DNA of 63,983 nucleotides, filler included, from Olpidium bornovanus S191 (taxonomy: Eukaryota > Fungi > Olpidiomycota), in NCBI GenBank assembly GCA_017911155.1. It is 27 parts of 27 records of this genome, joined end to end, with 100 filler letters (N's around TTAATTAATTAA, not from the genome) between each part and the next. Parts side by side here need not be neighbours in the genome. Positions count along the whole stretch, not along the records: positions 60,424 to 63,983 come from JAEFCI010010358.1; 26 more parts are not named here. One strand, 5' to 3'. This document shows positions 60,311-63,983 of the stretch, piece by piece. Under the pieces are notes generated by a model. The model saw only the letters and a program-made list of their open reading frames with translations, searched no databases and was not told the DNA's origin. The translations under genes were made by a program, and so were the position numbers. Positions within the stretch are counted from its first letter, which is position 1. Every line of letters starts with the position of its first letter.

Positions 60311-61073
60311 TCGTCGCCACGCCNNNNNNNNNNNNNNNNNNNNNNNNNNNNNNNNNNNNNNNNNNNNTTAATTAATTAANNNNNNNNNNNNNNNNNNNNN
60401 NNNNNNNNNNNNNNNNNNNNNNNCCATGCTCTCTGGTGGGTGTTTTGTTTTAATAATAGCGGGGTTCAAACTTAAGTTTTTGGCAGCAGATTTTATCCAA
60501 TTAACTACACCAGAGTGCGGCTGTATTTTGTCCAGAAGGATTAGGCCTTGCTTGGATGACCATTCTAAATACAATTTTGGCATCCGAAAATGCGTTCCGA
60601 CCCGAGACGGAAGTCGGCGGCCGTCCGGCCCTCGGGAATTGCCCCTGGAAATCGATCGCGGGCCGTTGGATCACGGCTTTCTGCTTCGTCATCTGCGCCC
60701 GGCCCGTGCGTCAGCGGACCGCCGATTCGCGCGGTGTGTGTGGAACTAGTCGCGGTCGATCGGGCCTTCGCCTCATTTGCCCAGGTTCTCTCTCTCTCGC
60801 TTTCCGTCGGAGAACACCCTCGCGATGCCTACCAATTTGCGAATTGCCATATCTAAAAATGATTCCGCTCGCCCTCTCCCCCCGATCCCAATCCACCCCC
60901 AGAACTTGTCGGGCCGAGATGATGATGATGATGAAGACGATTGAGGACGGTGATGAAAGATGACGATGATAATTATATATATATATATATTTGGGCCCCA
61001 CATGCCCTTGCGACGCGAAGTCGGGACCGTTTCAAATCGCGAGCGGGTCGCGCGGCGGGGATCTCACCGGGGC

Positions 61074-61118
<45 letters not shown>

Positions 61119-61141
61119 CCAAAAAAATTTTTCGGCCCGGG

Positions 61142-61174
<33 letters not shown>

Positions 61175-61293
61175 AAAAAAAAACGACCGATCCGAGCGGA
61201 GGAAGTCTGCGCGAACGGGGAGCGGGCGTTTTCTTTCTTTGCCCGGCCGGAGACGGTGCCCTCTACCGTCGAGGAGGGGTACAATCAAAAAAC

Positions 61294-61326
<33 letters not shown>

Positions 61327-61940
61327 GAGGCGGAAAACCGTTTCCGTTTCCTTTTTGTTTTCCCCTCTCTCGTTTTTTCGGAATTTTCGGTTGGGCGAGA
61401 GGTTACAGATCGGCGTCGGGGGGCGGTGGGTGGGGGGGGGGGGCGGGGGGGGGGGGGGGGGGGGGGGGGGGAAGGGAAGGGATCAACAGGCCAAACCCGG
61501 GGAAGTACAACTGGTGGCGTCTACGTCGGTAGACATCTCCAACGCTGGCAGCGGAGTTCAAGAAGACGGGGACAGACAGGAGTTCTGAAATGACGAGAAC
61601 CGCGCGCGGGGTTTGCTTGCTTTTTGAAATCCTGACGGGTGAAAAAAGAGGAAAAAAAAAACACCTCCCCAAATCTGGTTCGTGACATTCCCCTTCGAGA
61701 CGGTGTATCGCGTATGCTGCGCAAAAACAAAAAAAAAAAGAGATCATCATTTTTTTATGCACTGCTTTGGCTGCGCCGTAAGCATCTCTGTATCTAGCAA
61801 ATCGATCTATTGATGTGCCTTTGGCCGGGTGCGCAACCAGCCGGGCCGGCCGATTTCGGTGGTGGGGGAAAAACAAAAAAAATTTTCGCCCTTCGCCGCA
61901 TACCTTCCCGCCGCTTTCCCGGTCCCCCTCCCGAACGCGG

Positions 61941-63212
61941 TTATCGTCCAACAGACCAGACGAACGAGTGCCCGTATCCGCTCCCGACCGCCTTGACGGC
62001 CGCGGGCGCGTCGGTGACCGCCGGTTCGAACACGTCGGCCTGGTCTCCCGTGCCGCAGTTGCCGTGCTCGTTCCAACCCCACGCCGCCCACCTGCCGTCC
62101 TCGAACGCGCACAGCGTGTGCTCGGCGCCGGCGGCGACGGCCGAGACGCGGGGTGGCCGGCCTCCCTCGCCGAAGCGGAATTCGATTATTCTCGGCTCGA
62201 ACGGCGAAACGCCCTCGCGGACGGGACCCAGCTGGCCCTTGTCCCCGCGTCCCCACGCGCAGATCCGACCGTCGCCCAGCAGGACGGCGGTGTGGCTCCA
62301 CCCGCACACGACGTCCACGCCCGCGGAACCTGCGGGCAGTGCCGCTTCCCGCAATCTCGCGGTTCGCTCGGCGCGGGTCGCGTACCCCAGCTGACCGTGG
62401 CGATTCTCGCCGCACGTGAATACCCGGCCGTCCTCGGACAGAAGCGCGGTGTGGTTGGCACCGCAGGCGGCGCGGACGATCTTCGCCGGAACGTCCACTT
62501 TCCGCGGCACGTCCGTCGATTTGGTGGCGACGCACTGCTCTTCATCGTCTCGCTCGGCATTATTTCCGTCCGGTGGCGGCGTGGCCAAACCCAGGGCGCC
62601 CCGCGCGGATCCCCAGGCCCACACGCCACCCTGAGCGTCCACGGCGACCGAATGTCTCCTCCCGGCGGCAACGCCCGAGATCCTGACATCGCCGGGGAAC
62701 ATGACTCGGACCGGCCTGTCGATCCAGTCGGGCCTCTCCGCTAGTCGATCTTGGTTGACTCCTAGTTGCCCGTGCTTCGCACTTCCAAAGGAGTAGACGT
62801 TCCCGGCATTGTCGACGACCAAGCTGTGAGACCACCCGCACGCGGCAGCAACGCACGGCGGCAGCGGGAGTAACTGGAAGGAGAAATGGTTGTTCACGGA
62901 ATCGTCCGGTGTCTGCCCAGCGCCGTTCATGGCGCGAACGTCGTTGGGTGTGGCGCCGCAGGCTGGCCCAGCCGGCCGCTTTTTCTTGACCGCCAGACCC
63001 AACTGTCCCGTGTCGTTCAGACCGCACCCGTACACGTCACCGCGCTCCGTAACCAACAGGGTGTGGTTTCCTCCGCCAGTTACCAACCTCGGTGGTCTCC
63101 GTAGAGATATCGACTCTGGAGCCGCAAACACGCAGGTTACAGGCAAGCTCAGGTCGCCCGCACGCCCGACTCCAAGCTGGCCATGTCCGTTGCTGCCAAA
63201 TGCCTGCAATTT
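61941..63212 (-). CDS. ATS1: RCC1-repeat protein, Ats1/Kti13-SERGEF-like (C-terminal part of a fused ORF)
   Basis: KLQAFGSNGHGQLG...GGGNHTLLVTERGDVYGCGLNDTGQLG, CGWSHSLVV...FGSAKHGQLG, AAGRRHSVAV...WAWG, ACGANHT...CGENRHGQLG, VCGWSHT...WGRGDKGQLG and AAGAEHT...WGWNEHGNCG...VGSGYGHSF*. About 7 RCC1 blades. Confidence 0.85.
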   Translation of the reverse strand, partial: KLQAFGSNGHGQLGVGRAGDLSLPVTCVFAAPESISLRRPPRLVTGGGNHTLLVTERGDVYGCGLNDTGQLGLAVKKKRPAGPACGATPNDVRAMNGAGQTPDDSVNNHFSFQLLPLPPCVAAACGWSHSLVVDNAGNVYSFGSAKHGQLGVNQDRLAERPDWIDRPVRVMFPGDVRISGVAAGRRHSVAVDAQGGVWAWGSARGALGLATPPPDGNNAERDDEEQCVATKSTDVPRKVDVPAKIVRAACGANHTALLSEDGRVFTCGENRHGQLGYATRAERTARLREAALPAGSAGVDVVCGWSHTAVLLGDGRICAWGRGDKGQLGPVREGVSPFEPRIIEFRFGEGGRPPRVSAVAAGAEHTLCAFEDGRWAAWGWNEHGNCGTGDQADVFEPAVTDAPAAVKAVGSGYGHSFVWSVGR

Positions 63213-63317
63213 CCCGCCAGAGACTTCCAGTTTCCCGTTCGACGATGGCGAGCGCGACAACGGAGACTGGAAAGAGGAGTCGCCGCCTGCGATAAGGTTG
63301 TCCATGACGAAGTCCAG

Positions 63318-63983
63318 AGGACGGTAGTTTCGAAAACGAACGCCTGCAGCTTCGAACAGCTCCCGCGTAAGGTCGTCCATGCCGTAGGCCTGAGAGTAAA
63401 CCACTTCGCTGACGCCGACCTGGACAATTTTCTTGGCGCAACCTTTACTTTTGCGAGTGCACCGGTAAGCCAAGCCAACAAGACGAATGGGAAATCACAG
63501 TGCCGCAATAAAACGTCGTGTTGTTCGCGGCGCCGTTCCGCACGGAACATGCAAGAAGTATCGGCGCCCTTACCTAGGCACGGGCAGGTATTGCAATACA
63601 GTGTGGACTGTCCGTCATCGAGCCGAGTACGGCCGGCCTCTATCAAGGCGTTTTCCTCGGCATGTAGGCAAAGGCAGGTGTCGAGGGAGTGGCCGCAACG
63701 CGAGTTCATGTTGCAGCGGCGGCAACCGCCCTCCCCACAGTTGCGCAGACCGCGCGGCGTCCCATTGTAGCCGGTAGAGATGATTCGTCGGTCCTTTACG
63801 AGAATGCAGCCGACTGCCCGCTTCATGCAATTGGACCGTCGCGCCGCAAAATCCGATAACTGCATGAAATAACTGGAGGGGTTTTACGGCGTTAGACAAC
63901 ACAACGCTGCCAGACAATCCGGGCTAACAGCGCTCCGAGTTTCGCGGTCTTTGCAGGGCGACTCACGTGTCCCACGACGGTCG
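63318..63983 (-). CDS. DCD1: dCMP deaminase (N-terminal part of a fused ORF), 5' truncated by the window edge
   Basis: RPSWDT/YFMQLSDFAARRSNCMKRAVGCILVKDRRIISTGYNGTPRG...CLCLHAEENALIEAG...TLYCNTCPCLG/CAKKIVQVGVSEVVYSQAYGMD. HAE and PCxxC zinc motifs are present. Confidence 0.95.

Follow-up and report, generated by a model that had tools for sequence, protein, structure and literature searches.

THE QUESTION AND THE LOCUS

Does one small contig of the root-parasitic fungus Olpidium bornovanus encode two proteins or one? The DNA analysed, called the window in what follows, is a stretch of 63,983 nucleotides from strain S191 (assembly GCA_017911155.1). Its positions 60424-63983 are the entire 3,560-bp contig JAEFCI010010358.1, and all coordinates given here are those of the window. 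On the minus strand of this contig the reading frame of a deoxycytidine monophosphate (dCMP) deaminase of the Dcd1 type continues through a short linker into an RCC1-like propeller. A preliminary description of the sequence had proposed a lineage-specific fusion of Dcd1 with a Kti13/Ats1-like propeller. The genome is metagenome-derived: its source was non-axenic zoospores grown on the roots of cucumber, and MAKER was used for the annotation (PMC7865070).

We find that the locus is, with high probability, a genuine and expressed gene fusion: one spliced mRNA encodes a Dcd1-type deaminase, a linker and a complete propeller of the SERGEF/Kti13 type. The result is a new domain architecture made from two well-known families, a combination present in no other protein examined and in none of the literature searched.

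GENE STRUCTURE

The 5′ end of the gene lies beyond the contig edge. Its features are listed below in the order of transcription; RNA evidence refers to four public sequencing runs, X1, X3, X9 and X20, and UTR stands for untranslated region.

63967..63983, minus strand: end of exon 1 (..RPSWD and the first two bases of the T codon), cut by the contig edge; from translation and RNA loose ends
63873..63966, minus strand: intron 1, 94 nt, GTGAGT...CAG; from the sequence and RNA contigs of X1, X3, X9 and X20
63574..63872, minus strand: exon 2, dCMP deaminase core; Pfam PF00383 at 61.9 bits and alignment to fungal Dcd1
63664-63656, minus strand: HAE zinc/catalytic motif, within exon 2
63583-63575, minus strand: P-C-L of the PCxxC motif, within exon 2
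63443..63573, minus strand: intron 2, 131 nt, GTAAGG...AG, splitting the Gly codon of CPCL-G-CAKK; joint in all four RNA runs
63318..63442, minus strand: start of exon 3, C-terminal part of the deaminase (CAKKIVQVGVSEVVYSQAYGMDDLTRELFEAAGVRFRNYRP); from alignment and frame translation
63213..63317, minus strand: Ser/Gly-rich linker of 35 residues, LDFVMDNLIAGGDSSFQSPLSRSPSSNGKLEVSGG, stop-free; from the frame and RNA
63305-63303, minus strand: in-frame internal ATG within the linker; from the sequence
61944..63212, minus strand: seven-repeat RCC1-like propeller, assigned to the SERGEF/Kti13 clade, opening with KLQAFGSNGHGQLG at 63212; from Pfam, Atlas model and tree
61943-61941, minus strand: stop codon TAA; from the sequence
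61717..61903, minus strand: optional 3′ UTR intron, 187 nt, GTATGC...CAG, 38 nt past the stop; spliced in X3, retained in X1
61525..61716 (low end approximate), minus strand: last 3′ UTR exon; from a 192-nt loose end of the X3 contig

The deaminase frame ends ...ELFEAAGVRFRNYRP (the P at 63320-63318), enters the linker without a stop and runs on through the propeller to the TAA. The preliminary description had reported a deaminase with no stop behind it, a Ser/Gly linker of about 35 residues, about seven RCC1 blades ending at TAA 61941 and an internal ATG at 63303-63305. The frame and the linker peptides are confirmed at 63317-63213, and the blades, the stop codon and the ATG are present as described.

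Removal of intron 2 rebuilds the conserved LYCNTCPCLGCAKKIVQ in the alignment to fungal Dcd1, and the CPCL-G-CAKK join matches the LYCNTCPCLGCAKKIVQVGV block, which is nearly invariant across fungal Dcd1. The linker DNA is GC-rich and free of stops in all three frames. By our own estimate, chance would give an open, in-frame junction of 35 codons roughly once in ten cases; taken by itself the open frame is therefore weak evidence, and the case is carried by the RNA data.

TRANSCRIPTS ACROSS THE JUNCTION

Twenty public runs from eleven studies contain the stretch or part of it. Contigs of four of these runs (X1, X3, X9 and X20), from four studies and assembled independently in each run, were aligned to it. 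At intron 2 all four skip exactly 131 bases, with GT..AG on the gene strand, and this identical joint identifies the contigs as spliced RNA. The region 63200-63330, for which the preliminary description had proposed an RNA check, is crossed contiguously by contigs of X1, X3 and X9 and nearly so by those of X20. They show neither splicing nor termination in the linker, and the RNA contigs of the four runs have no stop, indel or further joint in the coding region.

Record 8 of X3 is a single contig of 2,163 nt. Its first 133 nt come from exon 1 and the sequence upstream of it, and exon 2, the whole of exon 3 and the spliced 3′ UTR follow; the contig departs from the genomic sequence at 61904, and its following 30 letters are exactly 61716-61687. 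Record 1 of X1 spans 61800-63444, linker included, and record 11 of X9 crosses the linker with 63151-63440 joined to 63572-63650. X1 also has a contig that retains intron 2, at lower depth. One extra A is seen in X1 in the homopolymer behind 61874.

Intron 1 is skipped as well. Contigs of X1, X3 and X9 jump from 63872 (63868 in X20) to exon 1 sequence, and the loose ends of the first three begin with the exact reverse complement of 63967-63983. Farther upstream the loose ends read ..PERLRPSWDT in frame, which matches the fungal Dcd1 consensus ERLRPSWDTYFM. The extension beyond exon 2 amounts to 774 nt in the X1 contig (30 letters of which were seen), so that there is room for the N-terminal region of 190-250 residues found in other fungal Dcd1 proteins. 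This region is probably present upstream, off the contig.

The X1, X3 and X9 sequences are at least 99% identical to the genomic contig and have three substitutions in common: a synonymous one at 62748, a change of His to Tyr at 62888 (in a propeller loop) and a change of Ile to Val at 63293 (in the linker). This indicates that they derive from a common strain distinct from the sequenced one. In X20, a root metatranscriptome labelled cDNA (complementary DNA), there is a relative with about 92% identity, which may belong to another Olpidium lineage. Its intron 2 joint and its junction of exons 1 and 2 are unchanged, and from either side its contigs read into the linker in frame. Among its listed differences in deaminase codons, 12 are synonymous and 4 non-synonymous.

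Thirteen of the runs in which Olpidium RNA or DNA occurs (X1-X10, X12 and X15-X16) are labelled as another organism, organism A, presumably a host plant. Olpidium sequence also occurs in the soil metagenomes X11, X13 and X14.

These contigs bear directly on the suspicion that two genes merely look fused, whether through a chimeric metagenome contig, a stop removed by error or a missed intron. Grounds for it exist: the source genome is a metagenome-derived bin in fragments, obtained from zoospores that were not axenic (PMC7865070); this contig measures no more than 3.5 kb; where DNA is GC-rich, a stop-free linker is nothing out of the ordinary; and at intron 2 the deposited gene model is demonstrably in error. 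Such an artefact of assembly or annotation is nevertheless very unlikely, because contigs from four studies reproduce the junction without stop, indel or extra splice, three of the data sets at 99% identity or more and one at about 92%, with intron 2 as the sole joint in the coding region. We regard this explanation as largely refuted.

The ATG in the linker brings up a second product, which would add to the fusion and not replace it: an internal promoter in exon 3 could give a shorter transcript, from which a stand-alone propeller would be translated starting at 63305-63303. The ATG is in frame and 31 codons upstream of the first blade, and in X1 the word depth is 24.2 for the exon 3 contig and 19.3 for the exon 2 contig, a small difference between depths of a kind that cannot rank the parts of a gene. 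But no contig start, loose end or joint lies near 63305-63440, and the ATG is off the position at which the homologues start (3-8 residues before FGSNG). An additional product of this kind seems unlikely.

THE DEAMINASE HALF

Exon 2 matches dCMP_cyt_deam_1 (PF00383) with 61.9 bits, well over the gathering score of 25. The deaminase domain is 61-71% identical to Dcd1 of chytrids, Zoopagomycota and Mucoromycota. To 119 of the matches listed its identity is 59-69%, with 96-100% of the domain covered (69% for Dcd1 of the chytrid Gaertneriomyces); all 120 of the deaminase matches listed carry PF00383, and most are named dCMP or cytidine deaminase. NCBIfam gave sub-threshold bacterial deaminase models only.

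When this half is aligned with fungal Dcd1, its catalytic His and Glu stand in nearly invariant columns. The HAE and PCxxC zinc motifs are intact, with CPCLGC spanning the RNA-confirmed splice 63574|63442. Judged by sequence identity, the orthologue of this half is fungal Dcd1, as opposed to Tad2/Tad3 or cytidine deaminase. In free-standing fungal Dcd1 proteins a variable tail of 7-40 residues follows the LRQ/FRN position, so that the Olpidium linker takes the place of that tail.

THE PROPELLER HALF

The exon 3 product matches PF25390 with 277 bits (cut-off 150) over profile positions 3-363 of 363, and it contains seven stretches of the RCC1 repeat PF00415. In the predicted structure of the ESM Atlas, residues 165-590 align to a 379-residue RCC1-like domain (RLD) propeller with a template modelling (TM) score of 0.92. 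The best matches to the propeller are single-domain proteins of 350-420 residues from Geosiphon, Ambispora, Syncephalis and Thamnocephalis, along with animal proteins named SERGEF. These free homologues start with M-x-x-L-F/Y-A-F-G-S-N-G and end with WGWNEHGNCG...GYG-SF-W. The Olpidium propeller keeps both ends and begins exactly where the free-standing homologues begin, with no ATG at that ancestral start.

A maximum likelihood tree was made from 44 proteins by quick search, with support from the Shimodaira-Hasegawa-like approximate likelihood ratio test (SH-aLRT); UVR8, RCC1/Srm1 and yeast Ats1 were outside the sample. The Olpidium propeller falls within a fungal clade (SH-aLRT 98), next to Zoopagomycota sequences. 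This clade is sister to animal SERGEF, with a joint support of 98, and RPGR, BTB-RCC1, HERC2-like and most bacterial RLDs lie outside the two together. P0089, a protein from a Joint Genome Institute (JGI) metagenome named ‘alpha-tubulin suppressor-like RCC1 family protein’ and taken as bacterial, has a long branch within the fungal clade; a fungal origin for this metagenome sequence is probable.

Among solved structures, which have the same propeller fold, UVR8, HERC2, RPGR and RCC1 match best (E 1e-43 to 1e-26). Yeast Ats1, a short and divergent protein, matches over one stretch of 80 residues with E 1e-15, below UVR8, HERC2, RPGR and RCC1. When the last blade is compared with solved structures, UVR8 dominates and Ats1 is marginal, a comparison that is uninformative on orthology. 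We also weighed whether UVR8 might be a nearer relative of the propeller than SERGEF and rejected this, as the best database matches and the tree favour SERGEF, and the PDB is without SERGEF.

SERGEF has been called the orthologue of yeast Kti13 (PMC7591051). Dph3 binds DelGEF/SERGEF directly (PMC3502187), and the yeast Kti11-Kti13 dimer parallels this binding (PMC10468694). With that orthology in the literature and the propeller in the SERGEF clade, the label ‘Kti13/Ats1-like’ of the preliminary description is reasonable, but indirectly, by way of SERGEF; direct similarity to yeast Ats1 is weak.

DISTRIBUTION OF THE ARCHITECTURE

DCD1 and SERGEF-like genes are separate and not adjacent in Gaertneriomyces, Phlyctochytrium and Thamnocephalis. 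The DCD1 neighbours in Gaertneriomyces are NDK and BolA genes; in Phlyctochytrium and Thamnocephalis it is the SERGEF-like gene whose surroundings are known, and the genes next to it are unrelated to DCD1. As the two genes are unlinked in three early-diverging fungi, there was no ancestral adjacency.

Only one database protein is 100% identical to the Olpidium product. This protein, P0001, is the deposited prediction for the locus itself. Among the best 120 long deaminase-containing proteins RCC1 domains occur in P0001 only, and among the best 120 propeller matches PF00383 likewise occurs in P0001 only. An exhaustive HMMER search with the whole of P0001 gave giant multi-RLD proteins for all of its best 150 matches, and is informative only above 294 bits, that is, for close fusions. 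Look-alikes in the ESM Atlas are RCC1 clusters only, none with a deaminase. A piece of 150 residues across the junction found no match in a metagenome scan, and a word search with a 200-residue junction piece found free-standing RLD proteins only, with 35% of the query covered. A degenerate DNA pattern for FEAAGVRFRNY gave no match and thus no second Olpidium-like locus. The preliminary description had proposed a check for separate copies, and no second Olpidium Dcd1 or SERGEF-like protein is found among the propeller and deaminase matches listed. The literature search gave no report of a deaminase combined with RCC1.

Together these searches lend moderate support, short of proof, to the view that the fusion is absent elsewhere. 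The claim of a lineage-specific fusion fits both the separate genes of the three fungi and the lack of any other PF00383/RCC1 protein in the searches.

THE DEPOSITED PROTEIN AND THE FLANKING DNA

P0001 has 590 residues and occurs on a single contig, 3,560 bases long. The name it was given, ‘MAG: regulator of chromosome condensation 1/beta-lactamase-inhibitor protein II [Olpidium bornovanus]’, takes no account of the deaminase. Its precomputed domains comprise PF00383 and RCC1 families, so that the fusion is already in the databases as a prediction, under a misleading name.

For intron 2, P0001 takes GTATTG near 63598 as the donor and the AG at 63448 as the acceptor (both within 63443-63600, minus strand). 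The protein accordingly reads STL|KGCAKK, and the eight residues YCNTCPCL, which hold the PCxxC zinc-ligand motif, are deleted. This splice is wrong, because all four RNA runs use the GTAAGG at 63573 and the AG at 63443. P0001 begins at an internal Met (MQLSDF), its N-terminal part being absent because the contig ends. A deposited protein that is misnamed, mis-spliced with loss of a zinc-ligand motif and truncated at the N-terminus matters for comparative use of this proteome.

Rfam, tRNA and tandem-repeat scans of the whole contig gave nothing beyond long homopolymer runs downstream of the gene, and 60424-61700 showed no gene, tRNA or Rfam family. Very long homopolymers (A40, A42, A36 and a G-rich run of 54) lie downstream of the gene at 61075-61471 on the plus strand, and (TA)n and (GAT)n microsatellites near 60925-60990.

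WEIGHING THE FUSION

Several points weigh against a working fusion gene or limit what the contigs say about it. Its support is at the RNA level. X1, X3 and X9 carry the label RNA by guess, and what identifies them as RNA is the joints from which the intron is missing. Overlapping transcripts can be merged in a de Bruijn contig; contigs also cannot show where transcripts start and end, which makes an extra internal transcript possible. About 12-15 nt of the X20 linker (about 63296-63310) are not bridged by a contig. In the covered parts of the X20 propeller, blade 1 and a loop insert, non-synonymous changes are frequent, at a contig depth of 3-5. Finally, that each half most likely keeps its ancestral job is argued from conservation only.

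The changes in blade 1 and the loop inserts of the X20 relative would also suit a recent, neutral read-through fusion, in which one half decays to a pseudo-domain while another copy does the work. Evidence for the fusion is confined to one Olpidium species, and the assembly is incomplete, so that a second copy could be hidden. Against such decay, all seven blades score as RCC1 repeats, and the C-terminal WGWNEHGNCG and GYG-SF-W motifs common to the free fungal homologues are intact; the deaminase zinc ligands are intact too and under purifying selection, and the second copy that decay calls for is missing from the matches listed. We hold this course of events to be distinctly improbable.

ORIGIN AND POSSIBLE FUNCTION

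An intact, expressed fusion, which we prefer, would have arisen through a rearrangement that brought a SERGEF-like open reading frame to a place immediately after DCD1. Three things would then have been lost, namely the stop codon of DCD1, the DNA between the genes and the start codon of the SERGEF-like frame, and the variable C-terminal tail of Dcd1 would have become the linker.

Deaminases of the Dcd1/DCTD family are oligomeric and under allosteric control by dCTP and dTTP. If the ancestral roles persist, as is most likely, the Dcd1 part would form oligomers that turn dCMP into deoxyuridine monophosphate (dUMP), and the tethered propeller would serve as a partner of Dph3/Kti11, with roles in Elongator-dependent tRNA modification and in the synthesis of diphthamide. 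Immediate effects would be equal co-expression of the two halves and the presence of several propellers on each deaminase oligomer; no new catalytic mechanism would be implied.

An adaptive, ‘Rosetta stone’ reading goes further. Oligomeric Dcd1 would display Kti13/SERGEF propellers that recruit Dph3/Kti11, coupling the supply of deoxythymidine triphosphate (dTTP) precursor to the modification of tRNA wobble uridine and elongation factor 2 (EF2) by radical S-adenosylmethionine (SAM) chemistry; or else the propeller would gate the deaminase. This we rate as improbable, and functional coupling of deaminase and propeller is speculation. If coupling or gating were true, it would suggest that the two pathways are functionally linked, in a way so far overlooked, in other eukaryotes too, although their proteins are separate. 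Should the fusion simply be functional, it would be a natural test of Kti13/SERGEF working while tethered to an oligomeric enzyme, and a weak guilt-by-fusion hint that links deoxynucleotide (dNTP) metabolism to the Dph3-dependent modification pathways.

COMPARISON WITH KNOWN SYSTEMS

The first half resembles fungal Dcd1 (the family of Saccharomyces cerevisiae DCD1 and human DCTD) in HAE, PCxxC, the Cys-rich insert CxEGGCxRCN and the upstream ERLRPSWDTYFM segment. It differs in having no stop after the domain, where the tail, variable and in other proteins usually free, acts as a linker into a propeller of 423 residues. The N-terminal P-loop-like region of the homologues is off this contig, and is implied by the RNA contigs alone.

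With SERGEF/DelGEF and its fungal orthologues (yeast Kti13/Ats1, also Dph8, the partner of Dph3/Kti11) the second half has in common a single seven-bladed RCC1-like domain, 350-420 residues long in those proteins. Its N-terminal FGSNGxGQLG start and C-terminal WGWNEHGNCG are those of free fungal SERGEF homologues. In contrast to them, the Olpidium propeller is without its own start codon, is fused behind an enzyme and has lineage-specific loop inserts, for example around 62990-62880 and 62600-62500; its binding to Dph3 is putative. UVR8, the HERC2 RLDs, RPGR and RCC1 have the fold in common with it, and RPGR, HERC2-like and BTB-RCC1 proteins stand on branches apart from the SERGEF clade.

Other long predicted proteins join a Dcd1 domain to an unrelated one: P0180 to a cyclophilin, P0182 to a ferric reductase and P0215 to GatB, in Mortierella, Dispira and Venturia. 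These may be merged gene models or further fusions. Their partner domains are different and they are predictions only, whereas the Olpidium fusion, alone among them, has been compared with RNA and is supported by it.

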